Virus record (IMG/VR): IMGVR_UViG_3300048591_000147
Location: 186,001-250,000 of that record
DNA length: 64,000 bases
Direction: 5' to 3' (one strand)
Below, one piece after another: positions 8,201 through 45,537 of the stretch (position 1 is the stretch's first letter; each line of letters begins with the position of its first letter). The notes under the pieces are model-generated. The model saw only the letters and a list, made by a program, of their open reading frames with translations, did no database searches and had not been told where the DNA came from. Position numbers and translations under genes: made by a program.

Positions 8201-11200
8201 GTTCTGTGGAATATATCACTGATTATGCCAAGGTCGTGGTGAACCCATACCATGTTCTTAACAGGGTTTATATCGTATGCTGGGTAATTAACAATATTGG
8301 TATATGACTGGATGTAGAACAATCCACTACCAGATGTCGTAATCGGAATCGCATTACCCTTTAATGCGTCATGCTTCGATACCGCTACCTGAAACTTAGT
8401 ATTAGTGGTGTTTCTAATTATATAATATGGTATATACTCTGATAGAGGATTATTAAATGGTTGTGGTAGCTCTGCATTACTATTCTTCAAGAATATGATC
8501 GGTGTGCCAGTAGCCCAACCAACAGTAGAATTGGATAGCTCCAAAGTATTATCCGATAAGTTAACAGAACATTGTAGTTTTAACTTGTTCTCTTGTTTGA
8601 TGGATTTTACTTGGTATGCCCAGTTTATGAATTTCTCAAGGTGCAACTGCCAATCGTTAGTTCTGCCAGTATCGGGATCGCTATTGTCCCCATCAGGATT
8701 CTTGAATTGAATTCCTTCATCATATAAGTATGACTCATATCCTTTAACGAAGTTGACAACACTCTGAATACCAGAAAGTTCTATTGGGAAGTTCTCAACG
8801 CGCACCGTGCGCTTATCATCTTCATAGACTCTCCATGGATATGTGGTGTTTGTACTTGCCAGTGCGTTGAAAGTTCTTTTTAATCTGCCGACAGAGTGAA
8901 TGCCATTGCCGACAGTCTGGATAGTTATAGCATTACCAAGACTTGCGGCACCAGCGTTTTTAGCTAACTTGAAAGAATAATCGTCTAGTCTGATTATGTA
9001 GTATGGAGTAAATAGATCTAACGGGGATGGTAACACACTACTAGAATCTAGGAAGATTTCTGTACCTGTTAACCATGTCGCTGGTAATGTTTTTGTGTCA
9101 TCAGAAATCAAATATCCATCCATGACACCGTCACTTATGCTGACGCTTTCATATACAAATATCTTGGTGGTCTGCGCTGTTATATCATACACACTATTTA
9201 ACACAATATAATCACCGTCATAGTTAGTACTATCTGCGATTTTAAATGTGCTTCTAGGTGAGAAAGTTCTCGTAACATTACCATACACTTCAAAAATTTT
9301 ATTAAATGTGTATGAAGACACTGAACTACTATGAATGACGAAGAAATCACTTACCGATGCGAACAAACCGGCATCGACAATACTAACGGCTGAAGCCCCA
9401 CCTATTGTGTTACTGATTATCTTCAGATTACCGTATTCTAGTATTGCTTCACCATATTCTGAAATTCTCTCATTGATCTCTGATAATAGAGCGCCCACAG
9501 TTTGAGCGTTGTAGCCCTTGATTATCAAATCCACAGTATTAATATTATCAAATTCTATACTAGCATAATAGGAGAAAGCAGTATTTGATAATTCGGTCTT
9601 CTTTGAATTAGTCAATGTCTGATTATAGTCAACTATCTGAAATCCTCTAGGCACAGTAATTGATGCTGTTTGTAATGGATATCTACCAACATCGCATATA
9701 TTGTTGAGCGTATCTACATAGAAGTCGAAGCACTCTGGGTCGTATAATGATATCGTTTTCACGGGTGTTAGTGAATCCAACTCTACTGTCCAGCCAATAC
9801 CATTATCTCTAGTCTTGCTATATTTGGATGGGACACTTAGTAATGTTGCCTGTAGCCCTACCATTGATTTGGAATCGAATGACTTCGTCTTGTTTATGGT
9901 TACATTAAAGTCTTTATCTGTTATGTCAAAGTTGTAGTTAAATACTGACAAATTATCAGTGTCTATCATACCACCGAACAAATAGGATAGCTTATGCTCC
10001 CATGTCTTCCAGATGGTTTTAAACGCTGACACTTCACCGTCAATGCTTGTGTATCTGATAAAGTATGCATACCATTGATTAATACCATTGGCCACATACA
10101 ATTGGTTATCAACTAGTTCACCGTGGAATGTTATTTCGCGATGGTTTCTAACTTTTTGTAATGTGCCGTCTATTTGTAGGCATGCAATAGTACAAAAGGT
10201 GGAATCAAATATCGCATTGAACACTTCAATTGGGTCTAATTTGAATGCTATGATTAGATCATCATAGTTTTTCCAAATACTTTTTTTCCACAACCATTCT
10301 ACCGTACCATGTTGCCCGAATTCGAAATCTAAATTAGGTGTCGTAACACCCTGATTCAAATTAATGTCAAAAAGCGTACGTATATTTGCATTTGTGGTGT
10401 TGGAGCTATTCCAATACGGTGGTAATAGATCATCTGGTGCATACCCATCATTAGTGTTCACAGAATCTATATTGACTGGTAGGAAATCAAATGTTGTATC
10501 TATCTGGCTGCTACCATTTGATGTATCGCCATTAGGTAGTAGATATCCACTTGGTACTATACCAGAAAGAATATTGGTCCACATGACAGAGTCCCAATAC
10601 CTATTGATCGACGCATTCGTGTTTACATATTCTGCATCCCACCACAACGGTTTATCGGTGTAACCCTGCAAAATCCAAGGTTGGTTGTTCGGATAAGCAG
10701 TTCCATACACATATTCGTATAATGCCTGCCAGCAACCAAATGTCGTATTGTCTTCAAGTCCGGTTACAGGGTGCTCTGGTATAGAAGTGTATGCGTAATT
10801 CCAAGTGAATGGGTCATTACTGTTAAACACTAAAGAATTCTTTAATGGATTAGTGATGTTATTAAGATTGATGAAATTATAGAACCGATCTTTTGCGAAT
10901 TCATCGTATCGGCCTAGTGTATTCACATCGTCAAAATTGTAACGATATTCATATGCTAGACAATCATTATATAACTTTAACTCGATATCTAGAATAAGAT
11001 TCGCCATTAATAGTTCTATATCAACTTTAAACCAAGTCAATGTCTCTGAAGACTTATAAATCTCTCTTGTTAGTGATTGCAAATCTGTTCTAACCAAAAT
11101 CTCACCAACATACGCAATATTGGGGAATGGTTCTGATGAAGCGTCCACTGTCTGGTACTGTGGGGATAGTTTCTTAATAATGGTTTCACGCTCTGCATTC

Positions 11201-14200
11201 AATAGACTAACTACTGAATGATGTCCGTCATGATGTACTATGACATAATTATCCAATTCATTTTTGAATTTATGTGGGTACGTCTTGTTGAAAATACCAA
11301 GACCAGCAGCACTGGTTATGAAGTTTTTAATTGATGTGTTTGTAGAGTCACCAAACCATTCAACATATTTGTCATTGTTTTCAAATTCGTCGATACAGTT
11401 TAACACGGTGTTATTGTTCAGGTCCGCTAATGTATTATTCGCAGATGATAAAATATCAATGTGTATTCTGTTCTTGAAAATTTCTTTAATATAGTTTATG
11501 GAAGAGTTGTAAGCGTTTGCTGCAAAATCCATAACATTTATCGGAGATCCACCATTAATAAACAACGCAGATACTAGGTTGTCTAACCCGCCGTTATGTT
11601 CTTTTATAGTACCACCAAGAATCTTATTAACATTGTCTAACAGATAATACTTACTGTTATTCTTTCCAAATAGCACGGACACTTCTTGAGCATCAATCAA
11701 ACTTGATACATGTCGCAATATCTCGCCACCACTAATCGTCTTTCTATTCTGATGTTCTATATTGTAGTACCAAGGATTTAATATATCCCATTGGTCTGAT
11801 ACTTTGACTGGAAGTGGTTTTTCCAAATTATTACCATGTTTCCAAACTGTTTCCAGTCTGTCTGTTAATAAATCATTATATGCATACAACGGTTGATCTT
11901 CGGACTGCAATAGGTTTTCAAATGTGAAGCCGCGCTTAATATAATCAAACACCATTCTTTTAAATGTGTATGGGCTAACTGGCATATCACTTGACTCAGC
12001 ATATTTGAATATTTCAGATGCTATGTCCGCTGGTGTTCCGTCACAATTGAAAATTTTAAATACTGGGTAAGAGTTTCTCGTAAATCTTTTCTGTTCTATC
12101 TTTCTAAGTCTTACTAGGTTGTACTTCTCATAGCCTGTCGGCGTATATATTAATACATCCCGTCTTCCGATATCTTCTAAGAAAGCTTCACCAACTTCTA
12201 TTCTAACAATATCATCTGTAGTCAATGTCACAGAATTATTAAACGTTATTCCTCCGACATAATCTGAGTTAATTAACGAACCATTATCAGTGAAATTGGC
12301 ATACTGGCGTACGCCATTGATATAGACTCTTATATCACCTTCTTGGTAATCGTCAAATAATACAATTTCTTGAAGACTCTCATGAAGTTCGATTGTTGCC
12401 CCAGACGTATTTGTTTTGATATTAAATTCTTGTGCAGTCAAGTATAAGTTTGAGTAGTAATCCCCCACACTGGAATATGATACAAAATCATTTACCATTG
12501 GATTTGGTGTCCAGTCATAACTAGACGCCACAATCTGTTTTACACCTTTAAATCTCCAATGATTCTCCGCATATCCCAACCAATCATCACCGAGACTTGT
12601 CTTGCTTGGACCTATTCTTGCGCCTATTGGTTTATCATTGATATCCGCTACATCATCCTTCAGATGTATCTTTGTCACGTAGCGTCCAGACGATGAATTC
12701 TTTACAAATTCGCAATAATCGATTGCATATACCCCATTATTTTCTGTAAAGTCCATGAACTTTAAACTAGAGCCCTCAATTGATGGTGTCAAATTACCAT
12801 ATTTTTCATTAAATACTACGGTGTAGTAATTCTCAAAATAGAATTCGTCGTCATCAGCAGTTAGCACTATATCATGCAACTCTAATAATTGTGGTTGCAC
12901 ATCTGTAGGTAAATACGAGTTATCACTAGTCTCTCTATAATCCCATTCATGTGATGCATATGAAGTATCAGATAATTCTACGAACGCATCAAATTCAATG
13001 ATAGGAATTTGCGCTCTTGATTTATCGGTGGTGTCACTTACCTGATCTTTATGTTCCCAGAAATTATTTGTATGCCAATCATCGTGTTGTGATATTTCGA
13101 TTAAGTGTTTGCCTCCAGTTAAACTTACGATATAACTAACGTTACGTACAACAACATTCCAAGAAGACCCGTCATACTGTAATAGTTCATCTTCCACACT
13201 GTCGTAGTATGTACTGTAAGGAGACGCTATTTGTGATTTGGTTAAAATGTTCTGTTTTCTGATTATCTTATAACTGATTGCAGAGTCACTCAAGAATCTG
13301 TTGTTAATGTTTAGGTTTAATTGTGTTCCGTATACTTCTAGTATTTCATAAATCCCAGTATACAGACCACTACTTATGATTACATAGTCGCCAGCGACAA
13401 CACCGCCCCCTATAAAATCTTGTAAACCATCGCTTAGTGTTTTTGTAGCTGCTAATACTTCCCCAGTACTAACAGTGTCTACTACCAATGCATTTTTAAA
13501 CCATATTTTTTCTAGATCTCTTAACGCCCATTCAGTATCAACGCTCACCGTAGTATTTCCAGTGGCGAAGAATTCTTTTTCTCCCTTCAACAGATATACT
13601 ATTGGAAGCAGATTTATGAACTGGCTTGGTGCTGTAAGGGTGCTTGGCAACCCTTCAACTGTGATGGTGGTTCTAAGACTCGCCGGATCGGAGTTAAATG
13701 CGCTTGATACACACTTCAATAAAATATCATTACTATCGAAGATACTAAACACATAACCCGGACAGAATAAATCAGTAACATTACCACTTACTGTTATAGT
13801 TGAGTCTACTAAATTGAAACCATTTATCACAACAGCCAATTTAGGATTACATACTCTTTTTATAATTCCAGTTAACGTTTCGGTAAATGTTAGCGTTGTT
13901 CTTCGAGAGCCACTATTGTAAAAGGTACTTGATATTTCTCGAACCACACCAGAACTCAATCCGTTAGTTATTTCGACATTCAATAAAATGTTATCACCAA
14001 CTGAGAATTGTGTAGTGAAATCACCGGCTATTTCAACGTATCCAATTGTATTGGGTAATGTTGACTCGTAGTGTGCATCATGTGATTGCACGACATTGAA
14101 TATGCTTTCCTGTGTCTGATTGAACCTAGAGGCAGAAAATTGGGAATAATTCTTTATCGTGATATAATCTACATCTATTTCCGGTCTTGTCCAGAAATAA

Positions 14201-14604
14201 TCTCTGTAGTTCATCAGCTTGTCTAAATTAATAGGAGGAACCCAATTAAATTCTAATAGCGCGCCCCATCTATCTAGACTTGGTATATCAACACCAATAG
14301 AATTCAACTTATCAACAAATTGTTCAAACGTCATGTATGAGTCTATGGAGCCAGTCTTCAAATGCGCAACTGGCTGCAATTGATTTACAGACCTGTATTC
14401 AGTAGGTTCATTTATTTTATATGACGCCACACTGGTAGTGTCTTCGTCGCCTATATTGCCGATATATCTAGTTAGTTCACTTTTAGACAGATATCTGTTA
14501 AACAGATTCTCGTTAATACTCTCCAATATCTTAGATTTATTAACGTTCGGTATTAGATTATTTAGATTAGTTCTTTTCTTAGAATAATCAGAGTTATTCG
14601 CCAT
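5284..14604 (-). CDS. Giant (~3100 aa) virion structural / baseplate protein (gp7-like position)
   Basis: Uninterrupted ORF after the gp6-like gene; ATG at 14604 with GAGG SD preferred over TTG 14622; motifs YRSVNQLQP, WVPPINLDKLMNYRDYFW, FWRGMIQNKGT, DEFWAYRLG. Confidence 0.8.
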   Translation of the reverse strand: MANNSDYSKKRTNLNNLIPNVNKSKILESINENLFNRYLSKSELTRYIGNIGDEDTTSVASYKINEPTEYRSVNQLQPVAHLKTGSIDSYMTFEQFVDKLNSIGVDIPSLDRWGALLEFNWVPPINLDKLMNYRDYFWTRPEIDVDYITIKNYSQFSASRFNQTQESIFNVVQSHDAHYESTLPNTIGYVEIAGDFTTQFSVGDNILLNVEITNGLSSGVVREISSTFYNSGSRRTTLTFTETLTGIIKRVCNPKLAVVINGFNLVDSTITVSGNVTDLFCPGYVFSIFDSNDILLKCVSSAFNSDPASLRTTITVEGLPSTLTAPSQFINLLPIVYLLKGEKEFFATGNTTVSVDTEWALRDLEKIWFKNALVVDTVSTGEVLAATKTLSDGLQDFIGGGVVAGDYVIISSGLYTGIYEILEVYGTQLNLNINNRFLSDSAISYKIIRKQNILTKSQIASPYSTYYDSVEDELLQYDGSSWNVVVRNVSYIVSLTGGKHLIEISQHDDWHTNNFWEHKDQVSDTTDKSRAQIPIIEFDAFVELSDTSYASHEWDYRETSDNSYLPTDVQPQLLELHDIVLTADDDEFYFENYYTVVFNEKYGNLTPSIEGSSLKFMDFTENNGVYAIDYCEFVKNSSSGRYVTKIHLKDDVADINDKPIGARIGPSKTSLGDDWLGYAENHWRFKGVKQIVASSYDWTPNPMVNDFVSYSSVGDYYSNLYLTAQEFNIKTNTSGATIELHESLQEIVLFDDYQEGDIRVYINGVRQYANFTDNGSLINSDYVGGITFNNSVTLTTDDIVRIEVGEAFLEDIGRRDVLIYTPTGYEKYNLVRLRKIEQKRFTRNSYPVFKIFNCDGTPADIASEIFKYAESSDMPVSPYTFKRMVFDYIKRGFTFENLLQSEDQPLYAYNDLLTDRLETVWKHGNNLEKPLPVKVSDQWDILNPWYYNIEHQNRKTISGGEILRHVSSLIDAQEVSVLFGKNNSKYYLLDNVNKILGGTIKEHNGGLDNLVSALFINGGSPINVMDFAANAYNSSINYIKEIFKNRIHIDILSSANNTLADLNNNTVLNCIDEFENNDKYVEWFGDSTNTSIKNFITSAAGLGIFNKTYPHKFKNELDNYVIVHHDGHHSVVSLLNAERETIIKKLSPQYQTVDASSEPFPNIAYVGEILVRTDLQSLTREIYKSSETLTWFKVDIELLMANLILDIELKLYNDCLAYEYRYNFDDVNTLGRYDEFAKDRFYNFINLNNITNPLKNSLVFNSNDPFTWNYAYTSIPEHPVTGLEDNTTFGCWQALYEYVYGTAYPNNQPWILQGYTDKPLWWDAEYVNTNASINRYWDSVMWTNILSGIVPSGYLLPNGDTSNGSSQIDTTFDFLPVNIDSVNTNDGYAPDDLLPPYWNSSNTTNANIRTLFDINLNQGVTTPNLDFEFGQHGTVEWLWKKSIWKNYDDLIIAFKLDPIEVFNAIFDSTFCTIACLQIDGTLQKVRNHREITFHGELVDNQLYVANGINQWYAYFIRYTSIDGEVSAFKTIWKTWEHKLSYLFGGMIDTDNLSVFNYNFDITDKDFNVTINKTKSFDSKSMVGLQATLLSVPSKYSKTRDNGIGWTVELDSLTPVKTISLYDPECFDFYVDTLNNICDVGRYPLQTASITVPRGFQIVDYNQTLTNSKKTELSNTAFSYYASIEFDNINTVDLIIKGYNAQTVGALLSEINERISEYGEAILEYGNLKIISNTIGGASAVSIVDAGLFASVSDFFVIHSSSVSSYTFNKIFEVYGNVTRTFSPRSTFKIADSTNYDGDYIVLNSVYDITAQTTKIFVYESVSISDGVMDGYLISDDTKTLPATWLTGTEIFLDSSSVLPSPLDLFTPYYIIRLDDYSFKLAKNAGAASLGNAITIQTVGNGIHSVGRLKRTFNALASTNTTYPWRVYEDDKRTVRVENFPIELSGIQSVVNFVKGYESYLYDEGIQFKNPDGDNSDPDTGRTNDWQLHLEKFINWAYQVKSIKQENKLKLQCSVNLSDNTLELSNSTVGWATGTPIIFLKNSNAELPQPFNNPLSEYIPYYIIRNTTNTKFQVAVSKHDALKGNAIPITTSGSGLFYIQSYTNIVNYPAYDINPVKNMVWVHHDLGIISDIFHRTDYYFTETPKIYDQNGNILNIDSILMYRQDKETKISLLKDIINSNAKYFEYVKRQNTNGTEQVSVVINQKIVNMSGFKLLLDAYEHILTFNNISVDGSMIFDSFLGIRTPRFYVEFSKSDKYTLRPNLGGYVLQDGKLVDNIENSVENIRYLYDTYKIVENKPIIERARKSIGYDGPRDYMDDLQINDKTQFAFWRGMIQNKGTNNAIKAFVNQPVFDDAHVDEFWAYRLGCFGDNKEKIYPELKLFTRDVSTKEMRVEFVTPDNTVLDETFEPVRLTDLSRWWNQPDQLFSLKPKSSFYFDSQVINIMNNVENDIASINNKLVLRLPVHADKVIISYWDSVKEETVQLSEGYEYSFINGRVIQMNSIAGADPRTIDGLSVYILSYNYDAQNPATLIDKRAGTVVTRVQLWHPALGQHYHVANSIIDIRNDSDVAVYNYEDVSQTETTWLADKVSTVWSDTTKMVYIPYYDARIFTDINERILKWGSMADWGSIDLYQWTESLVPPTEWDATVLKDAKNTNLLQDQKRSGSAYYKLYKNTETDPDEDPVWVEHVDVTEDFIVALVQQFTVPTNPAIDGVVDAYINGKYAGTLDLDTDTISEFCYGVELDGQIAKPRPQDMLTLIKVAVTPTMAQLEAGVEYKKVFPYSVTTKIDPVSRAEFSVYYFWVKNKTNKIAITGDAYMNMQEAAKQLRNIPAPYMILQGPRTPEFGYGLIYGTVFDEDAYELPHRYTQLVVKGLENTVKDDDRYSLRFMRDFTLRDNLPGPNSIYTPLYLKNVHWEWKLFREKQLFKIDAFLWDRITESLIGKRVVNGVVYLNPDAEEGNQEVVIPTINRFIYDQLYNSDTRFGLGEEQTFIDKDLGLYIINSLLVNNTFNFRNVDINEFIKNYNMEDQASLVLMMYDIYNNFTIDEVNAIFFEFLHAAMSLKREHADIFKTSWVALQATQNVRAPSNGVLRTTTFVDGVCPAAVEL

Positions 14605-14663
14605 AGTATCCTCAAATTTCAACTAAGATATTTATGCCGTTGTCCAAGCGTTAATTTAGGTCA

Positions 14664-24700: not shown

Positions 24701-25948
24701 ATGCTAACAAAATTTTATAGACTAAATGAAGCTCTAGAAGGTGCTGATGCCACTGCTATCAACAACCAAATCATAGATGCAATAAAGGCTACTGGATATT
24801 CTGGTACTCCATCTCAGCAATGGATTGCAGGCGCTATCAGAGCGCTTCAGAAATCTACCAGCGAACATAAACATCTTGTTAGTATGTTACACAAATACGA
24901 ACGTCTTCCACCAGACGAGCAGTTAGAATTTGGTAAAAAATTTAGTGTGCCAACCGCAAAGAATATCAGAGCGTTGTATAAAGTATTAGCAGATAACAAC
25001 TTAATTGATGCCGTAAAGAAAGAGACTGGTGAAATAGTATATAATTGGCCATCCAGTGAAGATGGTAATGATTTCAAAGGTAAGACTGACGTACTTAGCG
25101 AAATATCACGTTTAGTGGTAGCATCAAACGCTGAAAAGAATAAGAATAATGATGTCTTCGACAAGACTAAAAAAGAGATTCGTAGAGCGGATCAGTTAGT
25201 CAATGATGACGAAGAGGCTAAATTACGCGCCAACGGATATGGGAAGATATTTGACGTATTGCAATCCATGTCAGAAAGTGATATTAAGGGTGTTAGCTAC
25301 ATCACAAAAGTGCGCGAATATGCTAAGAAACATAAAACAAATTATTCACAGATACTAAAACAGCAGTTAGAGCGCGGTGGTAAAATTACTACCAGCTTAC
25401 ATAATTTCGGTTTTATCAACGATGACGGTAAACTTAACAACGAACTGATATCTTCGTTCTTTAAACTATTTAATAGTGACCCTCGTCTAGTGTTCAAGAT
25501 AAACAAAAATGCAAAAACATTATATGATATGTTAGAGAAAGCATCTGCTGATCAAGCATATGTCGATAATGACACTGCCAGAGAGTTGCAAGGTTCTGGC
25601 GAGGAACAACAAGCTACCCAATTGATGTCCCAGCTAACGCAGAAAGATATTGATGCTATAACAAGAAATCAAGTGTTCCCAGAAAGATTCAAGAAAATGG
25701 GACTATTGGATTCTCGTGGTAGAACTAATAAAGTGTATGCAGCTTTACAGGTAATGTTAAAGCGAAAAGCCAGTAGTTTGGGTGATGTTGTACAAGGAAC
25801 GAAGGATAGAACTGGTAGAGATGAAAAAACTGGTAGACTAGAACCGTCGCATCCAACTAATACGGGTGACACACATGCTAGGAAGCTTGATGACATCAAT
25901 AGACGTATTCAACAATTCTCACAGTTTAACAAGTCAAAACAGGCTTGA
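24701..25948 (+). CDS. Hypothetical late protein, candidate internal head protein
   Basis: 415-aa ORF; ATAAATA at 24672; N-terminus MLTKFYRLNE. Confidence 0.55.
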   Translation: MLTKFYRLNEALEGADATAINNQIIDAIKATGYSGTPSQQWIAGAIRALQKSTSEHKHLVSMLHKYERLPPDEQLEFGKKFSVPTAKNIRALYKVLADNNLIDAVKKETGEIVYNWPSSEDGNDFKGKTDVLSEISRLVVASNAEKNKNNDVFDKTKKEIRRADQLVNDDEEAKLRANGYGKIFDVLQSMSESDIKGVSYITKVREYAKKHKTNYSQILKQQLERGGKITTSLHNFGFINDDGKLNNELISSFFKLFNSDPRLVFKINKNAKTLYDMLEKASADQAYVDNDTARELQGSGEEQQATQLMSQLTQKDIDAITRNQVFPERFKKMGLLDSRGRTNKVYAALQVMLKRKASSLGDVVQGTKDRTGRDEKTGRLEPSHPTNTGDTHARKLDDINRRIQQFSQFNKSKQA

Positions 25949-25973
25949 CATACTCTATATACTGTAGTAGTAT
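25945..25973 (+). promoter_or_regulatory. Sigma70-type promoter facing a non-coding region
   Basis: TTGACA-17 bp-TAGTAT. Confidence 0.7.
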
Positions 25974-25979
25974 CCCACA

Positions 25980-26265
25980 AAATTTGGTAATATTGAAACG
26001 GTTGCGTTGAGGTTAATAACCAAGACCGAAGAGTTACTAGACATTAAGGAATATGTCTAGTTCAAAAAGCTCAAAGATCGTTGTAGATGAATTTAATATG
26101 TGAAAGCTTTTCGATATTAAGCGTTATATTAAATGATATGATCTACTAAAACAATGTGAAGCACCTTAGCTTCATGTTCCGTAATTGGCGCAATGCCATT
26201 TTGCGGCTCCGTTAATGGCAAGGTTATGGCTGGGTTTTGGACTGGGTGTCTTTCCCGATTTGCAT
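25980..26265 (+). ncRNA. Candidate structured non-coding RNA
   Basis: No ORF on the + strand; several inverted repeats (ACTAGACAT/ATGTCTAGT, GTAGAT/ATCTAC, TGAAGC/GCTTCA, TGCCATT/AATGGCA) downstream of a promoter. Confidence 0.4.
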
Positions 26266-26402
26266 ATAATTAATATTATAGCTTCTAAAAGATGGGGGGA
26301 AATCTTATCTTTTGGATTATGGCTTTTAGATAATGAATAATAAATCAAAAGCAAAAATACGAGCGAATGCGAGTATTTTTGTGCGAAGCACATAATTAAA
26401 TA

Positions 26403-26452
26403 ATGGCTTTAATTATATGGAAAAATTTTTTAATTATGGCTTTAATTATATG
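26403..26452. repeat. 17-bp direct repeat ATGGCTTTAATTATATG (x2) in an AT-rich tract
   Basis: Copies at 26403-26419 and 26436-26452. Confidence 0.9.
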
Positions 26453-26476
26453 CGTTTTTGTAAACAAATAAAGCAA

Positions 26477-26505
26477 TTGACAAAACGACAAATAAATGCT
26501 AAGAT
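26477..26505 (+). promoter_or_regulatory. Sigma70-type promoter for the helicase
   Basis: TTGACA-17 bp-TAAGAT. Confidence 0.7.
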
Positions 26506-26540
26506 TTTCTGGCTTTTTCATTCAAAAGGACCGAACACAC

Positions 26541-28139
26541 ATGTCAATTTTAAACCACTGGCCATTTAAACATTCACCACCACGTCAAACACAAATTGAT
26601 GTGCTTAAATGGGTAGAAGCATTACCAGAAAAAATTCGCTTCATTATTTGTGAAGTGCCAGTAGGTGGTGGTAAATCTCCTATTGCATTAACTATTAGCG
26701 CTTGGCTAAATGGACCAGTAGGTAATTCATTTATTCTAACACCACAGAAAATATTACAAAAGCAATATGAGGATTCATTTCCAGACAAGACCTTTGGGTT
26801 CTATGGGAAATCGAATTATGAATGCACTTTGAAAGGTACTAATTGTGAAATTGGTGATCTTATAAAGCCAAGGTGTGGAAGCACTTTGTGCCCCCACAAG
26901 TGCGCTTACGAAAGCGCACTCGAATCAAGTAATTTAATTATAAACTATTCATTAGCAATTACTTATCGATTGACTCCAGCAGATCTGATGAAGCGCAGAT
27001 CATTAATTGTATTTGATGAATGCCATAATCTGGAGAAGCAATTGATTGATATCTTTGGCGTCTTCATCTCTGAGAAGGCATGTAGGAAATATCTGTGCAA
27101 ATATAAAAAGCCGAAGAACTTGGTAGAAGGCTATAATTTCATTAAAGATGATTATAAAAACGCCATAATCTCCTACATCGCCAATAGGCAGATATATGTA
27201 GATGAAATAACCAATAACATGAATAATGGCCGTAAGGTCAGTAAAGATGAGGTCATGGCGATAGATGAATTGGACAAAACCAAGAAGCACCTGTTGATGA
27301 TCAATTTCTTGTTAGATAAAAAACAGGAAGACTTCGTCAATGATCACGTATTGATTGAACATGCCGAATCATTCGAAATAAAGGAATTATACGCAAAGAA
27401 CATCTTCAGCAACTTCTTCAACACAGTTGCCGATAAATTTCTATTCATGTCATCCACCATTCTGGATAAGGATGAATTTTGCCATGACTTGGGAATTCCA
27501 TTGGATCAAGTCGCATTCATTTCCACCCAATCGGAATTCGAGGTAGAAAACAGACAGGTGGTATTCAAACCATGCGCAAAAATGACCTATGGCTGGGAAA
27601 ACCGAGAAGCAGACAAGAACAAAATGCTGACATCGATTAAAACGCTCTGTAACGATGTTCATGACGAACACAACGGAGTTATCCATGCAGGTAGCTATCA
27701 GGTCGCTATGTGGCTTGTGAAGGCACTGGAGGGCAAGATACCGCATCGGATATACCACCACAATTCGGATGCAGAAATGAAGCGCGAGCAAGTCATTAAA
27801 GAATTCCAATCAGATGACTACAATGGGCCGAAAATATTGATCAGTCCATCAGTAACAGAGGGCTTGGATTTGAAAGATGATTTGGGTCGGTTTGGCATCA
27901 TTGCGAAAACACCATATCCATATCTGGGCGATGCTTGGGTTAAACGTCGTGCAGAAATAAGCCAGAAATGGTATATGCTACAAGCAATGAAAACCATCAT
28001 CCAGTCATCAGGGCGTGTGGTTAGATCAAAGGAAGATTGGGGCGTTACGTACATATTGGATGATTCATTCACCGCATTATATAATAGGATGCGAATGTAT
28101 ACACCGCAATGGTGGGTAGACTCTCTAGTCTATATGTAA
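26541..28139 (+). CDS. DinG/Rad3-family SF2 helicase
   Basis: PR..Q Q-motif, PVGGGKS, DECH, MSST, EGLDL, QSSGRVVRS; Cys cluster; ATG 26541 follows AAGGA. Confidence 0.9.
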   Translation: MSILNHWPFKHSPPRQTQIDVLKWVEALPEKIRFIICEVPVGGGKSPIALTISAWLNGPVGNSFILTPQKILQKQYEDSFPDKTFGFYGKSNYECTLKGTNCEIGDLIKPRCGSTLCPHKCAYESALESSNLIINYSLAITYRLTPADLMKRRSLIVFDECHNLEKQLIDIFGVFISEKACRKYLCKYKKPKNLVEGYNFIKDDYKNAIISYIANRQIYVDEITNNMNNGRKVSKDEVMAIDELDKTKKHLLMINFLLDKKQEDFVNDHVLIEHAESFEIKELYAKNIFSNFFNTVADKFLFMSSTILDKDEFCHDLGIPLDQVAFISTQSEFEVENRQVVFKPCAKMTYGWENREADKNKMLTSIKTLCNDVHDEHNGVIHAGSYQVAMWLVKALEGKIPHRIYHHNSDAEMKREQVIKEFQSDDYNGPKILISPSVTEGLDLKDDLGRFGIIAKTPYPYLGDAWVKRRAEISQKWYMLQAMKTIIQSSGRVVRSKEDWGVTYILDDSFTALYNRMRMYTPQWWVDSLVYM

Positions 28140-30350: not shown

Positions 30351-31393
30351 TACTTTAATCCCTCGTATATTTTAACTAACAACTCTTTATCCATTTTCTC
30401 GGAAACGATTTGCATCAGCATTGATTTGATCAATTCGTGTGTAGACTGAGTGTCTAATTGCTCTTCATTTAGTTCTGTATTTTCTAGTACTTCCTGTTTC
30501 TCTTGCGTTTCATTAAAAAACAGTTCTCGTAGCTTATATGATTCTATAAGAATATTACGTAATTCTATGCTTTCTGAGTAACTGATCTCAACGTCAACAG
30601 TGCATCGCACTCTTGCACCAGATAATAGGATGTCACCATCCTCTAACGCATCACTGAGTTTGCATGTGATGTACTTAGGACAGTCTGGCCAATCAATGAA
30701 CTCCAGTGCATTTGTTTCAAAGTTGTATATGGCCATGCCCCTAGCGTTGTCATTAGCATCAGAAAAATCCATGGGGAATGTATTACCAATATAATGTATA
30801 TTGTCTGCTTCCTGTCTTTTATGGAAATGACCAGAGAAAACACGTTTTTGTTTTTTGAAAAATTTCTTATGGTCCAGACCGTGAGTCGAGATAGAATGCT
30901 CGCCTGTTAATATAAACCCTGCCAAATCCAAGTGCCCTAGTGCGACAGGAACTTTTTCATGTTTCAGCAACTCGGCATTTTCATTCTCATAGATGTATGG
31001 AATCAATAACACCGAATTGTGTACGTTTGTCAGTACTGTAATGTCGTTGATGACATTGAAGTTTGATAAGTGCTCAAATATTTCAGTGTTGAATACATCT
31101 CTATTGTTTCTATTATGTAGATCATGGTTGCCGACAATGAAATATATTGGAAGACCAAGACTGTTTAATTTCTTGGCGCATCTGTTTGAGTATTGTAATG
31201 TCAGCCCATTGATGGATGATCGATGCTCGTACCAATCACCCAAGAAATATATGTGATCTATTGATTTGTCTTTCTTGACCTGTTCACAGAACCAATCTAC
31301 ATAGTTCACACAGTCGGTGTTGTGCTCTTCACTGTTGTTGCGCCTCCCCAAGTGAATATCCGTAAACATCGCGGCTTTTTTAAGTTTATTCAT
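30350..31393 (-). CDS. Recombination endonuclease nuclease subunit (gp47/SbcD/Mre11)
   Basis: DIHLG, LGD, GNHD, SGHFH. Confidence 0.95.
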   Translation of the reverse strand: MNKLKKAAMFTDIHLGRRNNSEEHNTDCVNYVDWFCEQVKKDKSIDHIYFLGDWYEHRSSINGLTLQYSNRCAKKLNSLGLPIYFIVGNHDLHNRNNRDVFNTEIFEHLSNFNVINDITVLTNVHNSVLLIPYIYENENAELLKHEKVPVALGHLDLAGFILTGEHSISTHGLDHKKFFKKQKRVFSGHFHKRQEADNIHYIGNTFPMDFSDANDNARGMAIYNFETNALEFIDWPDCPKYITCKLSDALEDGDILLSGARVRCTVDVEISYSESIELRNILIESYKLRELFFNETQEKQEVLENTELNEEQLDTQSTHELIKSMLMQIVSEKMDKELLVKIYEGLK

Positions 31394-31991
31394 TTACTTC
31401 CTGTTCCTTCTCTACGTCTGGTTCAATTATATCTTCATTGACACCTTCAGGCAACACGATGAATAACTTATCATCCAATTCATCGACTGCATCAGTATTG
31501 GGATCGTTGAAAAATAATACATCAGATTCGGTGTCACTTGAATCTTCGAACCCTACAATAAAGTTATCTCTACCGACTCTTTCCATCTCTAATAATTCCA
31601 TGAATGAAGGATTCAATCCTAAATCTTTCTTCACGGCTTTCTTGGTGTCTTGTGCCTTTTTCTCTGAGTTACCATATTGGTAAAAGGCGTGTCGTAGAAT
31701 TTGCGTAAAGTACGCGAACGGATTTTTTGATTTTTCTGGGTTGAAAGACTTCCATACTTTGACGACAGTTAAAAGGCCGAATGCCTGCATGTCTTCTTCG
31801 TGTGAGAACACGTTGGAATAGTCTGGGTGTTTCGCGTATCGTTTACATAAAACCATTATCATCTTACCAAGTTCATTCGTCATTCTATTTTGCGCATGAC
31901 TCAGTTCGATCTCTTTCATCAGGTCCGCATTGTTTAAATAGTTCTTCGGTTTCTTCTTTTTCACTATCTCTGTCATATTGATTAGCTCCAT
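31386..31991 (-). CDS. Late-transcription sigma factor (gp55-like)
   Basis: NYLNN, FNPEKSKNPFAYFTQI...AF; adjacent to gp47/46 as in T4. Confidence 0.9.
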   Translation of the reverse strand: MELINMTEIVKKKKPKNYLNNADLMKEIELSHAQNRMTNELGKMIMVLCKRYAKHPDYSNVFSHEEDMQAFGLLTVVKVWKSFNPEKSKNPFAYFTQILRHAFYQYGNSEKKAQDTKKAVKKDLGLNPSFMELLEMERVGRDNFIVGFEDSSDTESDVLFFNDPNTDAVDELDDKLFIVLPEGVNEDIIEPDVEKEQEVNE

Positions 31992-32065
31992 TTGCAGTTT
32001 AGTATAACAATAAAATCTATAAAGATCAAATCATAAATATGCATAATTAATGGGATTTGTATTTA

Positions 32066-35000
32066 ATGGACTTTAACGATAAAGATATTTTGAAAAAACT
32101 AATGGAGGCAGTTACTAAGCTTGCTGGTAATAGTCAATATTCAAGACCATCGGCTAACTCAGGGTCTTCAGCAGAAGACGCTTTAGAAAAATATCAAAAG
32201 TTTCTAGTTGAAGAAACTACGCTGGCCGGAAAATATCAAAAAGCATTCTCCAATGGGTTATTTAGAACCTTGGCCGGTTTACCAAAAACATTGAACAAGG
32301 TTTATGATCAGATCGAAGCTGACTTGCGCACCAATAATGACGCCATAAACAAGATACAGAAGCAAACAATAGAAAGTGTTAAAGCTCACAAACTGAATAA
32401 TAAAGAGATAACTAAACTAGCTCTGGAGACTGGTAAGATATCTGACGATATTAGCAAACACTCTAAAGCTGTTGGTGTTAATACTGCATTACAAAAACTT
32501 TCTAATGAGAAATTGAAGAACGCTACAGAAAAGCATAATGCCGCATTATCAGAACAGGCCAGCTTGATAAAGAAGCGATCAGAAGCAACTCATAAAATGC
32601 TTAAAGAAACCCTAGCCGATGAACTTAAAAAAATCGGGAGCGTGTTAAAACAGTCTGCCGCCGATCTTAAAGAATCAAGTGATGATGACGCAGAGATAAG
32701 ACGGAAAATATCAGAAAGTGCTAATGAGCTTCGTGACTCCCTTGATTTGATATCAAATAGTAAAATATTTGATAATCTTGATAAGCATGATCAGGATGCT
32801 ATAAAAGATTTTATAAAGAGTGGTTCAGTTGAAATGACTGACGCTGTTGTATCAGCGATGAAGAAATTTGAAGAGATGTCGCCAGCTATCCAAAATACTT
32901 TGAAATCATTGGTTAATAAATCGGTAGAACATATTAGAACTGGTGTTAGTGACATATCATCAAAATTGCACCGTGCCGGCGCAATGGCAGTTGTGTCTGG
33001 CAAGGGTATTTTAGATTCATATAGAGCACAATTAAGTGCTAACTTGATTGAATCAACGCCAACTTCCATTATGGGATATGGTATGGATGCCGGTGAACAA
33101 GCAGATATAATTAAAGGGTTTGCAAGAGAAATAGCATCAATCAGTGGCACTAATAATATGTCAAAGGCATATAACGAGAGTGTTACGTTATCCGATTTAC
33201 ATGACACCGCTAAATTGTATGGGTTGACTGGTAAAGCTGCACAAGAATTAGCTTTACAAAGCGTTCGGACTGTTAATCAAATGGGTGCTGGTACGTCTGG
33301 CACAAGTACATCCACCACTGCTAAAGCACTTATGCAGCAAATGTCGTCATCTGCGGCTTATTTACAAACTGATAAAGCGGCTTTTGCTCAAGACACTATA
33401 AACGAGTTACAGAGTGGCATATATGATAGTGAGATTACTCGCCTACGCATGCAAGGAAAAACTGGTGCCGATCTTTCCAAAAACATGATACAAAACATAA
33501 CTGCACTTAAAGGGAACACGGTACAATTAGGATTTAGTAATTCGTATGCGCAACAATTATTACAAAATTCCATGAATGCCAAATTCGGTGGACTTAGTGA
33601 ACTCATTAATCGTAAAGTGGCCTCTGGGATGGGCGGCCAAATAATACCAAATATGCTTGGTGGCAACGTTGCTAAAGAAAAGATGGATGCTTTTAGAAAA
33701 TATCAAGAGGGTGGTGGGTTCTCGGCACTAAAAACTCCTGAAGAACAAACTGCATATTTACAGCTTACACAAGATTTTGCTACGGCATATAACAAGGCAT
33801 ATGAAGCCAGTAATAATGCACCCGCTAACAGCATCGAAAAACGAGAAGCTGATAGTAAATTGATGGCGCTTGGTGCACAAATAGAAATATTACGTGCAAG
33901 AAACATTGACATGGCATCTCCAGAAACAATGTCAGCAGCGCTAAGATCGGGATTTGTACAAGAATCTATAACCAATCAAACTACTAAAGATTTTAGTCCA
34001 GTGGTAAACGTAAATAAAGAATCCGTGGCTGCTGCTGGAAGTATTGAGAGTTTTAACAATACTATGGGAGTATTTGAACAGCGATTCCTTGAATTATCAG
34101 AATGGGCAAGAGGTATTGCCAACAATCCATTTGGAAATCTAGCTGGAGCGGCAATTGGTGGTATTGGTAGTATGGTCGGTAGTGCTGTTGGTACTGGACT
34201 TACAATGTGGTTAATGGGAGCCGGTGGAGTTGCAGCGACAGCAGCTATAGGCACTGTAGTTGCAGGCGCATTAACAATTACAGGAATCGTGGCAGCAGTT
34301 GGTTTAGTAGCGTATTCAGTAGATACAATATTTGATTCTTTTAAAACACTGTTGAAATGGTATGGAGAGGACAGAACAAGAGAAGAAGAAGAGAGAAAAA
34401 GAGTTGCGGCAAGATATGAAGCAAGTAAAGCTAGAGAGGCATCAGGGCAGCCAGCAGTTCTTGGAGATATGTATAGAAAAGTATTCGAAGAGGCTACCGG
34501 AAAAACGCTTACTAAAGATGATGATTTTAGTTATGATGGTAAGGGTAGAATGACATATAATGGTGAAGTTGTCAGTGATGCAGATAGAATAAAGGTAGAA
34601 AATCTTGCGTATTCCAAACAAATTGCAAAAACTGGTAATAGCGACAGATTAACAGGTGCTCCATTAGAACAGCGTTCCAGAATATTAAGAGAAGAAGAGG
34701 CAGCATACCGTAATTGGAGAACTAAAGAAGTAACTCCTGTTATGCCATCTGGCGCACAGCGAACTGGCGGTAGAGGAAAAGCATTAACACCTGTAGCGCC
34801 CATGGTTAACCCAACACCTACCGCCGTTCCATCACCTATATCTAGTTCCGCACCATCAACACCAACTATTGCGCCGCAAACCTCTGCCATCGCAAACACA
34901 TCAGGCTTGACAGATGTACAAGCTAGCTTAGTAAACTCGTTGGCATCACAAGGCATAACAGACCCAAATAAAGTTTCTAATATATTGGCACAGGTAGAAG

Positions 35001-35737
35001 GTGAATCAAAATTTGTGCCGAAGAGTGAGAATATGAATTATTCCGCACAGCGACTAATGGAAGTGTTTCCATCACACTTCTCATCACTTGCGGATGCACA
35101 ATCAGTAGTAGATCAGGGTCAGGAAGCAATAGGTAATAGAGTTTATGGTGGTAGAAACGGTAACGCTCAGAATGAAGGATATAAGTATAGAGGAAGAGGA
35201 TTTATACAATTATCAAACAAAGATAATTATGAGATGTTCGGAAAAATAATAGGCGAAGATTTAGTAAATAATCCAGATCTAGCGAACGATCCTGTTATCG
35301 CGTCAAAGATAATGGCAGCCTATTTCAAACAACGGGAAAACACTGGTAAATATGATTTAACAGATATCAATTCCACAGGAAAGGCAGTTGGTTATGCAAC
35401 TGGTCCGAAAGAGACTGCCCATCGTGCCTCAATCGCAGAACAATTTAAGAGTAAACTAAGTCTTCAGTCAAATGTGACAGGATCTATCAATAGCAATCTT
35501 GCAAATCCCGCTAATAATCCAGTCACCATGTGGAGCATGATCGCTAATACATTGTCAACTGGTAATTCTGCATTGGTAAGCGGTATAGATAAGCTTAACG
35601 ATGGCATACAAACTAATAATAAATTAACTGGCATAACTGCTGCAAACACAAATCCAGAATTGAATCGCAAACCAGCTACGGAAAACGAGCAAAAGCCTTC
35701 TTACCGAGCGGGTAATAGACAAGTAGCCGCGACATAA
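32066..35737 (+). CDS. Tape-measure-like protein with C-terminal GH19 lysozyme/chitinase domain
   Basis: Long helical Ala-rich body, hydrophobic Gly/Ala segment, Pro/Thr linker, then ILAQ..GES, ENMNYSA.RL, VYGGRNGN, YRGRGFIQLS.KDNY; start 32057 (TTG) or 32066 (ATG). Confidence 0.8.
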   Translation: MDFNDKDILKKLMEAVTKLAGNSQYSRPSANSGSSAEDALEKYQKFLVEETTLAGKYQKAFSNGLFRTLAGLPKTLNKVYDQIEADLRTNNDAINKIQKQTIESVKAHKLNNKEITKLALETGKISDDISKHSKAVGVNTALQKLSNEKLKNATEKHNAALSEQASLIKKRSEATHKMLKETLADELKKIGSVLKQSAADLKESSDDDAEIRRKISESANELRDSLDLISNSKIFDNLDKHDQDAIKDFIKSGSVEMTDAVVSAMKKFEEMSPAIQNTLKSLVNKSVEHIRTGVSDISSKLHRAGAMAVVSGKGILDSYRAQLSANLIESTPTSIMGYGMDAGEQADIIKGFAREIASISGTNNMSKAYNESVTLSDLHDTAKLYGLTGKAAQELALQSVRTVNQMGAGTSGTSTSTTAKALMQQMSSSAAYLQTDKAAFAQDTINELQSGIYDSEITRLRMQGKTGADLSKNMIQNITALKGNTVQLGFSNSYAQQLLQNSMNAKFGGLSELINRKVASGMGGQIIPNMLGGNVAKEKMDAFRKYQEGGGFSALKTPEEQTAYLQLTQDFATAYNKAYEASNNAPANSIEKREADSKLMALGAQIEILRARNIDMASPETMSAALRSGFVQESITNQTTKDFSPVVNVNKESVAAAGSIESFNNTMGVFEQRFLELSEWARGIANNPFGNLAGAAIGGIGSMVGSAVGTGLTMWLMGAGGVAATAAIGTVVAGALTITGIVAAVGLVAYSVDTIFDSFKTLLKWYGEDRTREEEERKRVAARYEASKAREASGQPAVLGDMYRKVFEEATGKTLTKDDDFSYDGKGRMTYNGEVVSDADRIKVENLAYSKQIAKTGNSDRLTGAPLEQRSRILREEEAAYRNWRTKEVTPVMPSGAQRTGGRGKALTPVAPMVNPTPTAVPSPISSSAPSTPTIAPQTSAIANTSGLTDVQASLVNSLASQGITDPNKVSNILAQVEGESKFVPKSENMNYSAQRLMEVFPSHFSSLADAQSVVDQGQEAIGNRVYGGRNGNAQNEGYKYRGRGFIQLSNKDNYEMFGKIIGEDLVNNPDLANDPVIASKIMAAYFKQRENTGKYDLTDINSTGKAVGYATGPKETAHRASIAEQFKSKLSLQSNVTGSINSNLANPANNPVTMWSMIANTLSTGNSALVSGIDKLNDGIQTNNKLTGITAANTNPELNRKPATENEQKPSYRAGNRQVAAT

Positions 35738-45016: not shown

Positions 45017-45108
45017 GGATAGGTGGGGGAGAGGTTTAACCCATCCTGTTGCTAACTGGGCGAGTCGCCTAAAAAACGGCTCCGTGGGTTCGAATCCCAC
45101 CCTATCCG
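45017..45108 (+). tRNA. tRNA-Ser(GCT), no encoded CCA
   Basis: GGATAGG/CCTATCC acceptor, TT-GCT-AA loop, long variable arm, GGTTCGAATCC. Confidence 0.9.
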
Positions 45109-45114
45109 AAAATT

Positions 45115-45190
45115 GGTAATGTAGCTTAACTGGTAGAGCAGAAGTTTCATAAACTTTTAGATGTTGGTTCGATTCCAATCATTACCACCA
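45115..45190 (+). tRNA. tRNA with CAT anticodon (Met or lysidine Ile2)
   Basis: GGTAATG/CATTACC acceptor, TT-CAT-AA loop, GGTTCGATTCC, ACCA end. Confidence 0.9.
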
Positions 45191-45197
45191 AATTTTG

Positions 45198-45494
45198 ATG
45201 ATAAAAATGAACGATAATTCTTTTGCATATTTCAATTTAACACTTGAGTTGTTTCGGGCAAGACGTAATCCAAATTACACGGAAGAACGACTAGAACAAA
45301 TTGAAAATTTTTTGTGTGATGAAATGGATGTCGCATGGTATCAGACACCTGATGAAGATGATTTTAATATACGCTCATTAGTTCAATATCTGATTGCACA
45401 AGATAATCCGAATGTTTTTATAAATAAAGAAAAGCAATGGATAGTTGGCAGAGAGGACTATAGCACCAACTTGGAAAGTTGGAGATCGCCCTAA
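45198..45494 (+). CDS. Hypothetical protein within the tRNA cluster (3' end overlaps a tRNA)
   Basis: Protein-like ORF; start uncertain, no clear SD. Confidence 0.45.
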   Translation: MIKMNDNSFAYFNLTLELFRARRNPNYTEERLEQIENFLCDEMDVAWYQTPDEDDFNIRSLVQYLIAQDNPNVFINKEKQWIVGREDYSTNLESWRSP

Positions 45495-45530: not shown

Positions 45531-45537
45531 AAAATAT

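Follow-up and report, generated by a model that had tools for sequence, protein, structure and literature searches.

A large structured non-coding RNA encoded upstream of a helicase gene in jumbo phages

Results

The locus and its features

The DNA analyzed was a 64,000-nucleotide stretch (the window) of the uncultivated jumbo phage record IMGVR_UViG_3300048591_000147, positions 186,001 to 250,000. Within it, a gap of 592 nt, the longest in the window without tRNAs, separates a 415-aa ORF from the start codon of a DinG/XPD-like helicase gene. The phage is T4-related, with a gp20 portal, a gp55-like sigma and gp46/47. The first part of the gap encodes a roughly 260-base, intricately folded non-coding RNA, which is followed by a 3' extension, a polypurine tract, an AT-rich repeat-bearing stretch, a terminator-like hairpin and a promoter for the helicase (Table 1).

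Table 1. Coordinates of the features of the gap and its flanks, in positions of the window
Feature	Coordinates	Strand	Description
Gap	25949-26540		592 nt, between the 415-aa ORF and the helicase ATG
Sigma70-type promoter	25945-25973	+	-35 TTGACA (25945-25950), 17-nt spacer, -10 TAGTAT (25968-25973); inferred start about 25979-25981
RNA core	25979-26238	+	Five-way junction (P1, P2 domain, P5 domain, P7, P8)
P1	25979-25988 with 26229-26238	+	Closing helix
PK1	25990-25996 with 26111-26117	+	Pseudoknot, AUAUUGA with P5b loop UCGAUAU
P2 domain	25998-26081	+	P2, P2a, P3, outer and inner P4
P2	25998-26003 with 26076-26081	+	
P3	26011-26014 with 26018-26021	+	GGTT/AACC
Outer P4	26031-26034 with 26069-26072	+	GAG..CTC
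Inner P4	26036-26044 with 26053-26061	+	ACTAGACAT/ATGTCTAGT
PK2	26045-26049 with 26164-26168	+	Kissing loop, P4 loop UAAGG with P7 loop CCUUA
P5 domain	26083-26146	+	P5, P5a, P5b
P5	26083-26088 with 26141-26146	+	GTAGAT/ATCTAC
P5a	26091-26099 with 26126-26134	+	ATTTAATAT/ATATTAAAT
P5b	26106-26109 with 26119-26122	+	Near-invariant 9-nt loop that forms PK1
P7	26153-26161 with 26170-26178	+	Includes TGAAGC/GCTTCA
P8	26179-26184 with 26201-26206	+	Inner UGGC/GCCA stem, GCAA loop
3' extension	26243-26280	+	P9, a pyrimidine tract and P11
P9	26243-26246 with 26254-26257	+	UGGG with CCCG
P11	26265-26270 with 26275-26280	+	A/U hairpin
Polypurine motif	26285-26299	+	A-rich stretch followed by G6 (26294-26299)
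AT-rich stretch	26317-26452	+	TTATGGCTTT-like 10-mers at 26317, 26401, 26434 and 26507; 24-nt repeats at 26396-26419 and 26429-26452
Terminator-like hairpin	26352-26381	+	A-run, stem, tandem G·A/A·G pairs, short stem, loop, U5
Mini-hairpin	26381-26391	+	GTGCGAAGCAC
Helicase promoter	26477-26505	+	TTGACA-17-TAAGAT, TG upstream of the -10 box
Helicase ORF	26541-28139	+	DinG/XPD-like

Each of the two promoters matches 10 of 12 consensus positions. Such matches are no commoner here than in shuffled sequence (6 found, 5.8 expected), so the weight of the upstream promoter comes from its conservation, with the -35 box, spacing and -10 box kept in register in eight related loci (designated L004, L005, L011, L020, L021, L022, L023 and L024). 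Nearly all members of the family have a sigma70-type or extended -10 promoter just upstream of the helicase, which argues that the RNA is a separate transcription unit.

Covariation supports the fold

The core folds into a five-way junction locked by two tertiary pairings, a pseudoknot (PK1) and a kissing loop (PK2). Compensatory changes were already present in 19 of 67 pairs with only four sequences. In a tool-independent MAFFT alignment of nine sequences, 95.1% of cells pair, against 35–43% when the partners are slid, and 37 of 82 pairs change on both sides, against 3–11 pairs for the slid controls, with 0 of 500 shuffles reaching this. The window contains 12 G·U pairs, five of them in P1, that would be A·C mismatches on the other strand and show that the + strand is the folded one. 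Folding energy alone is only modestly better than shuffles and does not distinguish the strands (z = −2.20 on the + strand and −2.44 on the − strand).

Within the core, exchanges of C-G/G-C/A-U and A-U/U-A/C-G in P2 leave 100% of cells paired, all nine inner P4 pairs covary, and all nine P7 pairs covary in an alignment of 23 sequences. The P5 domain contains the 21-mer AGCTTTTCGATATTAAGCGTT, invariant in the near clade. P8 is CCGUAA/UUGCGG in the window, CCACAA/UUGUGG in L011 and CCAUG/CAUGG in L004. PK1 pairs in 91.5% of cells in 23 sequences despite its absence from the covariance model (see below), and eight segment/loop variants co-vary (e.g., AAUUCUG/CAGAAUU, AAUCUCG/CGAGAUU, AACGUUG/CGACGUU and AAUCCUG/CAGGGUU). 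PK2 is the weakest of the named pairings, with 76–80% of cells paired, though L024 has CAGG/CCUG, L004 has AGGUU/AACCU, and L023, which lacks the whole P3-P4 arm, also lacks CCU in the P7 loop.

The first-pass annotation, made from the sequence alone, had proposed a promoter-driven, ORF-free structured RNA, a reading that is strongly supported here. Five of its six helices (P3, P4, P5, P5a and part of P7) are confirmed by covariation. The sixth, TGCCATT/AATGGCA, is not supported, as TGCCATT lies in a clade-specific hairpin (P8, CCGTAA/TTGCGG enclosing TGGC-GCAA-GCCA) that is replaced by a shorter, different hairpin in relatives, while AATGGCA stays. The annotation missed P1 and both tertiary pairings, and the folded RNA extends beyond its end at 26265, as P11 covaries (UAUAAU/AUUAUA in the window, UAUGAU/AUCAUA in L021, AUUCAA/UUGAAU in L004 and CAACAAU/AUUGUUG in L023).

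Distribution of the RNA family

A covariance model (R1) scores the window at 282 bits (E 3e-71), and the RNA is a single copy in the 315-kb genome. The model found 15 more divergent members at E from 1e-18 to 1e-4, all on the + strand upstream of the helicase, and two more (L025 and L026) were added with a PK1 descriptor. The family occurs in at least 25 related phages of a clade of T4-related jumbo phages, in every member found between a poorly conserved 340–470-aa ORF and the DinG/XPD-like helicase gene, though this census rests on R1 and a hand-made PK1 descriptor and about 55 of the 80 helicase loci remain unclassified. An exact 19-mer scan of metagenome contigs gave nine loci, of which only L011 was a true relative and the rest were chance matches. 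No match was found by blastn of the gap and of three divergent members against 50,697 phage records, nor by tblastn of the 415-aa ORF, and no cultured member was found in these searches. Interestingly, the syntenic gap of the cultured phages XacN1, RAS14 and Xoo-sp13 holds a different conserved structured block with the same G-run, though R1 does not detect the XacN1 or RAS14 element even with filters off.

The RNA matches no catalogued family among the 4227 models of Rfam 15 (including GOLLD, ROOL, HEARO, riboswitches, RNase P, 6S, tmRNA and group I/II introns). The whole window gave only four tRNAs elsewhere, the region 25800-26650 at E up to 10 gave one chance hit at 15 bits against a threshold of 70, and 19 related loci gave no hit. 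ARAGORN found no tRNA or tmRNA gene in 25800-26600. The main text of a 2023 catalogue of candidate structured RNAs in IMG/VR mentions no helicase-associated motif (PMC10690425), although its supplementary tables of unnamed candidates were not compared. The gap does not appear to be protein-coding; the only frames are 51 aa (+) and 73 aa (−), relatives differ by 10-, 4-, 3- and 1-nt indels with compensatory substitutions in helices, and the small ORFs predicted by gene callers differ in place and length between relatives. A small ORF starting at the AUG just before the G run was also rejected, as the AUG is ACG in L030, L031 and L034 and the frames differ.

Elements downstream of the core

Almost every member examined has a polypurine motif of the form AAAAAAU-GGGGG-A-GGGAG or AAC-GGGGG-UA-GGG-UA-GG (L026 has only G4/G3 runs), and XacN1, RAS14 and Xoo-sp13 carry a purine tract ending in G6. 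The tract can pair with pyrimidine tracts on either side, but this is statistically weak; pairing with the upstream tract has a consistent position, while its energy is no better than shuffles. An intramolecular G-quadruplex was rejected as a general feature because the window clade has a single G6 run.

The stretch from the G run to the helicase has a GC content of 0.29, against about 0.38 for the genome, and ATTATGGCTTT occurs nowhere else in the genome. Related loci carry repeats of different sequence at the same place (four copies in L031, five in L071 and four in L034). Six of 23 loci have four or more copies, while shuffles never exceed three, but the mean best copy number is 2.8 against 1.9 in shuffles and some members have none, such that the enrichment is modest and not universal. 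The terminator-like hairpin (−12.8 kcal/mol, z = −2.55) follows a pattern, stem-C-GA-RC-loop-GY-GA-G-stem and a U-run, that recurs in most members (L022, L023, L024, L032, L041, L045–L048, L064, L071 and L073), though termination itself is inferred. The long-range inverted repeat GCATATAATTAA/TTAATTATATGC was rejected as an RNA helix, as relatives covary within the local hairpin instead. The mini-hairpin is unique in the genome, with matching GCGAAGC-type mini-hairpins in L004, L025, L026 and L047.

Evidence for expression is weak. One metatranscriptome yields a single 242-nt contig at 25993-26234, the core alone and its only contig on 3.5 kb, but the contigs come from runs chosen because they share words with this stretch and cannot show ends, strand or level.

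Discussion

The core belongs to a previously uncatalogued family of large, tertiary-structured non-coding RNA. Large RNAs with conserved tertiary structure are rare, and almost all that have been characterized turned out to be ribozymes, riboswitches or RNP scaffolds. The transcript is inferred to start at its own promoter, which is sigma70-type in this clade, to run through the 3' extension and the polypurine motif, and probably to end at the G·A-bulged hairpin, giving about 400 nt in total.

The function of the RNA is not shown. The leading reading, held tentatively at a probability of roughly 0.35, is that the locus is a transcription-primed replication origin of the T4 oriE/oriF type; the first-pass annotation had likewise suggested an R-loop primer transcript for an adjacent ori-like tract, which is neither shown nor excluded. 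In this scenario, the G-cluster of the nascent RNA would nucleate a stable RNA-DNA hybrid (R-loop) that opens the AT-rich stretch and supplies a primer, the folded 5' domain would keep the upstream RNA off the template or recruit a phage factor, and the alternative pyrimidine partners of the G tract would set whether the hybrid forms. The adjacent DinG-like helicase would be suited to remove such hybrids, as DinG-family helicases act on R-loops and G-rich structures (PMC10530614, PMC10400533). The promoter, the AT-rich repeats and the polypurine motif fit this reading, as does the position of the locus, 3 kb from the strand switch at 22731/22844 and from the local minimum of cumulative GC skew at about 209–210 kb of the genome, although the skew minimum coincides with the switch of gene orientation and is not independent evidence. 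However, no replication data exist for any member, a primer transcript is not known to need a conserved five-way junction with two tertiary pairings, and several divergent members appear to have a late-type TATAAATA motif upstream instead of a sigma70 promoter, which fits an early origin poorly, although T4 oriC may depend on a late promoter (PMC3016281). It is a tentative possibility that the RNA is a new class forming an integral part of a viral replication origin, with its folding, perhaps sensing a factor, gating origin firing in jumbo phages, or alternatively a new ribozyme or RNP RNA class specific to these phages.

Nearly as likely as the origin is a free-standing, trans-acting RNA, such as the RNA subunit of a ribonucleoprotein, a ribozyme or a decoy for a host factor, with its position next to the helicase merely reflecting conserved gene order. 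The size and tertiary complexity, the near-invariant junction and loop nucleotides, the paired 5' and 3' ends, the promoter and terminator-like hairpin, and the metatranscriptome contig limited to the core suit such a molecule, and the change of promoter type between members is easier to accept for a trans-acting product than for an origin. Yet no partner has been identified, and the predicted AF2 structure of the upstream ORF (pLDDT 72.8) gave no significant fold match, only MarR-type winged-helix, RTP and ROQ hits with E above 0.1. Further, this reading does not explain why the polypurine motif is the most widely conserved primary sequence of the region, and position and orientation next to the helicase are strictly kept in every member found. 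That constancy would suit a cis-regulatory leader of the helicase, either a riboswitch or a protein-binding operator, in which ligand- or protein-dependent folding of the core decides between the mutually exclusive pairings of the pyrimidine tract (P9 or the G run) and the terminator hairpin. Such a leader is unlikely, as the terminator-like hairpin lies about 110 nt after P1, the helicase start is 300–730 nt away and has its own promoter in nearly all members, and no Rfam riboswitch matches. The near-equal fold z-scores of the two strands, the AT-rich sequence and the GCGAAGC-type mini-hairpins, a type that may form stable DNA hairpins, might instead point to DNA-level elements, including cruciforms, hairpins of a displaced strand or protein-binding palindromes, or to chance inverted repeats. 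This is already largely refuted, because G·U pairs, through which many covarying positions pass, are meaningless for duplex DNA, cruciforms do not explain the covariation of long-range P1 and of the loop-to-single-strand pseudoknot, the promoter is conserved in register, and chance is excluded by the slid-partner and shuffle controls.

Among known systems, GOLLD and ROOL also appear to be large, complex, strongly covarying RNAs of phage or prophage genomes and metagenomes with unknown biochemical function, but their Rfam models do not match at any threshold, and the RNA described here is smaller (about 260-nt core, 320–400-nt transcript), has a different architecture and has the helicase as a fixed genomic neighbor. 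Lysine and cobalamin riboswitch aptamers probably share a P1-closed multi-way junction, a loop-loop kissing interaction and conserved junction nucleotides, whereas here there is no adjacent expression platform. The ColE1 RNA II primer and the mitochondrial LSP transcript with the CSB II G-run offer a possible parallel, as promoter-driven untranslated RNAs whose folding and G-rich element govern a persistent hybrid used as primer, and G5-A-G3-type runs may resemble CSB II. There is, however, no sequence or structural homology, no antisense RNA I-like partner was seen, RNA II consists of stem-loops without the covarying pseudoknot and kissing loop, and with its single G6 run in the window clade a hybrid quadruplex is not generally possible.

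In T4, oriE has an early promoter plus iterons, oriF and oriG have a promoter plus an AT-rich unwinding element with a persistent R-loop, active origins sit at transcriptional divergence points with compositional shifts, and the UvsW helicase removes origin R-loops (PMC3016281). The locus described here shares a promoter whose transcript would enter an AT-rich stretch, a position near a transcriptional divergence point and a compositional shift, and a genome-encoded helicase that can act on R-loops, though one that is DinG/XPD-like and not UvsW. The T4 origins share no sequence motif and their RNAs have no known conserved tertiary fold, while here a 260-nt pseudoknotted domain and a conserved G-cluster motif are the defining features.

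Genomic context and the intergenic gap

The 314,956-bp IMG/VR virus record has direct terminal repeats, is estimated to be complete, and its genes mark a T4-related jumbo myovirus, with a T4-type portal, a gp55-like late sigma factor, gp46/47-like SbcCD, and a T4 baseplate-hub protein. The window also contains a very large ORF of 3112 aa amongst the tail and structural genes, a cluster of four tRNA genes, two of them 92 nt long, which suggests a long variable arm, and a 1226-aa protein with a C-terminal glycoside hydrolase 19/endolysin-like domain that is probably a virion-associated lysin. Based on the helicase, the nearest cultured relatives are the Stenotrophomonas phages CM1 and RAS14 and the Xanthomonas phages XacN1 and Xoo-sp13 (47-48% amino-acid identity), and sequencing runs that share words with the locus are wastewater and freshwater metagenomes.

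The 592-nt gap lies between a 415-aa ORF and a DinG/XPD-like helicase. The ORF has no Pfam or PHROG match and keeps its position in all relatives but diverges fast, sharing 18-38% amino-acid identity with its homologues. Its AF2 model (pLDDT 72.8) is helical with three beta-hairpins and a basic, disordered tail, and gives only weak fold hits (E above 0.1) to MarR-type winged-helix proteins, the replication terminator protein, and the ROQ domain. The two promoter-like sites of the region are as described in the first-pass annotation, though such sites are as frequent in shuffled sequence and their weight comes from conservation. The minimum-free-energy fold of 25975-26265 is only modestly better than shuffles, and equally so on both strands (z = -2.20 and -2.44), such that thermodynamics alone would not have settled whether the region encodes a structured RNA.

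Features of the RNA locus and its surroundings (window positions unless a locus is named)
Feature	Position	Strand	Remark
3112-aa ORF	5284-14622	-	
Late-promoter-like motif NATAAATA	upstream of 22844, 32057, 35800, 52547, 55029, 55702, 56148, 57210	+	
Late-promoter-like motif NATAAATA	upstream of 3666, 4165, 5238, 14622, 17950	-	
Strand switch	22731/22844		
415-aa ORF	24701-25948	+	
Promoter-like site	25945-25973		
Intergenic gap	25949-26540		592 nt
P1	25979-25988 with 26229-26238	+	closes the junction
PK1 (pseudoknot)	25990-25996 with 26111-26117	+	segment right after P1 with P5b loop
PK2 (kissing loop)	26045-26049 with 26164-26168	+	P4 loop UAAGG with P7 loop CCUUA
A/U hairpin	26265-26280		
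Polypurine motif	26285-26299		A-rich, then G-run
Terminator-like hairpin	26352-26381		-12.8 kcal/mol, z = -2.55
Mini-hairpin	26381-26391		GCGAAGC-type
Proximal promoter of the helicase	26477-26505		
Helicase	starts at 26541		DinG/XPD-like
gp55-like sigma factor	31386-31991		
1226-aa protein	32057-35737	+	
tRNA cluster	45017-45609	+	four genes
Syntenic gap, XacN1 (locus L027)	2757-3440		
Syntenic gap, RAS14 (locus L028)	2630-3449		
Syntenic gap, Xoo-sp13 (locus L109)	444-1140		
Small ORF called in gap, relative L020	2188-2418		
Small ORF called in gap, relative L021	2668-2859		
Small ORF called in gap, relative L022	2595-2795		
Small ORF called in gap, relative L024	1737-1883		

Covariation and architecture of the RNA

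Nine distinct near relatives, all with the same gene order and a gap of 530-700 nt, were obtained by protein-guided retrieval from IMG/VR, exact-word scans of the viral contigs and of the metagenome contigs, and look-ups of helicase homologues. The gap is far better conserved than the upstream ORF and changes by compensatory substitutions. Small ORFs (48-76 aa) placed inside the gap of four relatives by the gene callers of the source collections differ in position and length and overlap the structured RNA or its 3' extension, and so are probably spurious. With only four sequences, RNAalifold already identified 19 of 67 pairs with double changes. A manually constructed structure was then counted on an ordinary MAFFT alignment of the nine sequences, in which 95.1% of cells form standard pairs, compared to 35-43% when the 3' partners are slid by 1-3 columns, and 37 of 82 pairs carry double changes, compared to 3-11 for the slid controls. 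None of 500 shuffles reached any of the five measures. Twelve of the pairs in the window are G·U, five of them in P1, so only the + strand folds, in agreement with the direction of the promoter. A purely DNA-level (e.g., palindrome) or chance explanation is essentially excluded.

Helix P1 closes a junction from which four elements radiate, the P2 domain (P2, P2a, P3, and outer and inner P4), the P5 domain (P5, P5a, and P5b), P7, and P8. The single-stranded segment right after P1 pairs with the near-invariant loop of P5b to form a pseudoknot (PK1), while the P4 and P7 loops pair as a kissing loop (PK2). Interestingly, the relative L023, which lacks the P3-P4 arm, also lacks the CCU in its P7 loop. 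Of the six helices proposed in the first-pass annotation, five are right, while TGCCATT/AATGGCA is not supported, as those bases belong to the clade-specific hairpin P8.

Extent of the family

A covariance model of the nested pairs (R1) identified 15 further, much more divergent members (26-80 bits; E from 1e-18 to 1e-4) amongst 76 IMG/VR loci fetched with a helicase profile, all on the helicase strand and 350-730 nt upstream of the helicase. In the resulting 23-sequence alignment, 65 of 78 pairs show double changes, though this alignment is fitted to the model and the nested pairs are therefore biased towards it. PK1, however, is not in the model and still pairs in 91.5% of cells, through eight different sequence variants. 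A simple PK1 descriptor also recovers the element in two more distant loci, L025 and L026, the former of which R1 scores only weakly (E = 0.019). The RNA is single-copy in its genome, matches no Rfam family in the window or in 19 related loci, and is not a tRNA or tmRNA. No cultured phage record contains a member detectable by blastn.

The syntenic gap of the cultured relatives XacN1, RAS14, and Xoo-sp13 holds a different conserved block of about 330 nt, unannotated in all three records, with clear compensatory changes (GGTAC/GTACC against GGTGT/ACACC; ACGGACA/TGTCCGT against GCATAAG/CTTATGC), a C6 tract, and a purine tract ending in G6. R1 does not detect this block, which is either a second structured RNA or a very diverged homologue.

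Collectively, these results describe a real and well-supported family of large pseudoknotted non-coding RNA in uncultivated T4-related jumbo phages. The family is uncatalogued, though it may be among the unnamed candidates of a 2023 catalogue of structured RNAs from IMG/VR (PMC10690425). The first-pass annotation, which had proposed a promoter-driven, ORF-free candidate novel structured RNA, stands in its observation and its primary interpretation.

Sequence downstream of the core and expression

Folded, covarying RNA continues past position 26265, where the first-pass annotation had ended the candidate. A small hairpin sits next to a pyrimidine tract and is followed by an A/U hairpin that covaries as UAUAAU/AUUAUA, UAUGAU/AUCAUA, AUUCAA/UUGAAU, and CAACAAU/AUUGUUG. 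The polypurine motif that comes next is the most widely conserved primary sequence of the whole region. Divergent members whose cores share little sequence with the window almost all carry AAAAAAU-GGGGG-A-GGGAG or AAC-GGGGG-UA-GGG-UA-GG, and the cultured relatives carry the purine tract ending in G6. The motif can pair with pyrimidine tracts on either side, but these pairings are not better than shuffles. About 55 nt further on is a terminator-like hairpin with an unusual pattern of tandem G·A/A·G pairs, followed by a U-run, that recurs in most members, which suggests a recognised motif rather than a plain terminator. GCGAAGC-type mini-hairpins recur just after it (in the window and in L004, L025, L026, and L047, loci of relatives), followed in the window by AT-rich repeats and the helicase's own promoter. 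A proximal promoter of this kind is present in nearly all members, and the RNA is therefore treated as a separate transcription unit.

A motif, NATAAATA, similar to the T4 late promoter TATAAATA, precedes many structural genes in the window, which fits the presence of the gp55-like sigma factor. Several divergent members of the RNA family (L045, L046, L048, L049, L041, and L073) have this motif 40-55 nt upstream of the RNA instead of a sigma70-type promoter.

Evidence for expression is limited to assembled contigs. In one wastewater metatranscriptome (X20), the only contig on a 3.5-kb stretch is a 242-nt piece at 25993-26234, the core of a 91%-identical relative, while in another (X10) contigs cover the flanking genes too and one ends at 26297, in the G run. 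As these runs were chosen because they share words with this very stretch, and contigs show neither ends nor strand, this is only weak support for an abundant core RNA.

Possible roles and comparison with known systems

Although none of these data show function, the leading testable hypothesis, held at a probability of about 0.35, is that the RNA is an origin or primer transcript. Supporting features include the promoter, the G-cluster, which likely favours R-loop initiation, the AT-rich stretch with repeats that differ in sequence between members, the position 3 kb from the strand switch and from the local minimum of cumulative GC skew, and the adjacent DinG-like helicase. These features parallel those reported for T4 (PMC3016281), where oriE has an early promoter plus iterons, oriF and oriG have a promoter plus an AT-rich unwinding element and a persistent R-loop, active origins sit at transcriptional divergence points with compositional shifts, and UvsW removes origin R-loops. 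However, primer RNAs are not known to need such a fold, several members have a late-type TATAAATA motif upstream, the repeats are only modestly enriched and not universal, and the skew minimum is confounded with gene orientation.

A trans-acting RNA, RNP, or ribozyme is almost as plausible, if equally tentative, and is favoured by the complexity of the fold, the near-invariant junction bases, the paired ends, and the variable promoter class. This reading leaves the conserved polypurine motif and the strict linkage to the helicase unexplained, and no partner has been identified, with only the weak winged-helix-like hits for the model of the upstream ORF. Given that the RNA appears to be transcribed separately from the helicase, a role as a leader or riboswitch of that gene is unlikely.

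The RNA is not an established member of any of the known systems with which it can be compared; all Rfam models fail, and whether it belongs to the transcription-primed origins is open. If it is an origin or primer transcript, it works most like T4 oriE/oriF or the ColE1 RNA II system, and if it is a trans-acting RNA, RNP, or ribozyme, it resembles orphan large phage RNAs such as GOLLD and ROOL.
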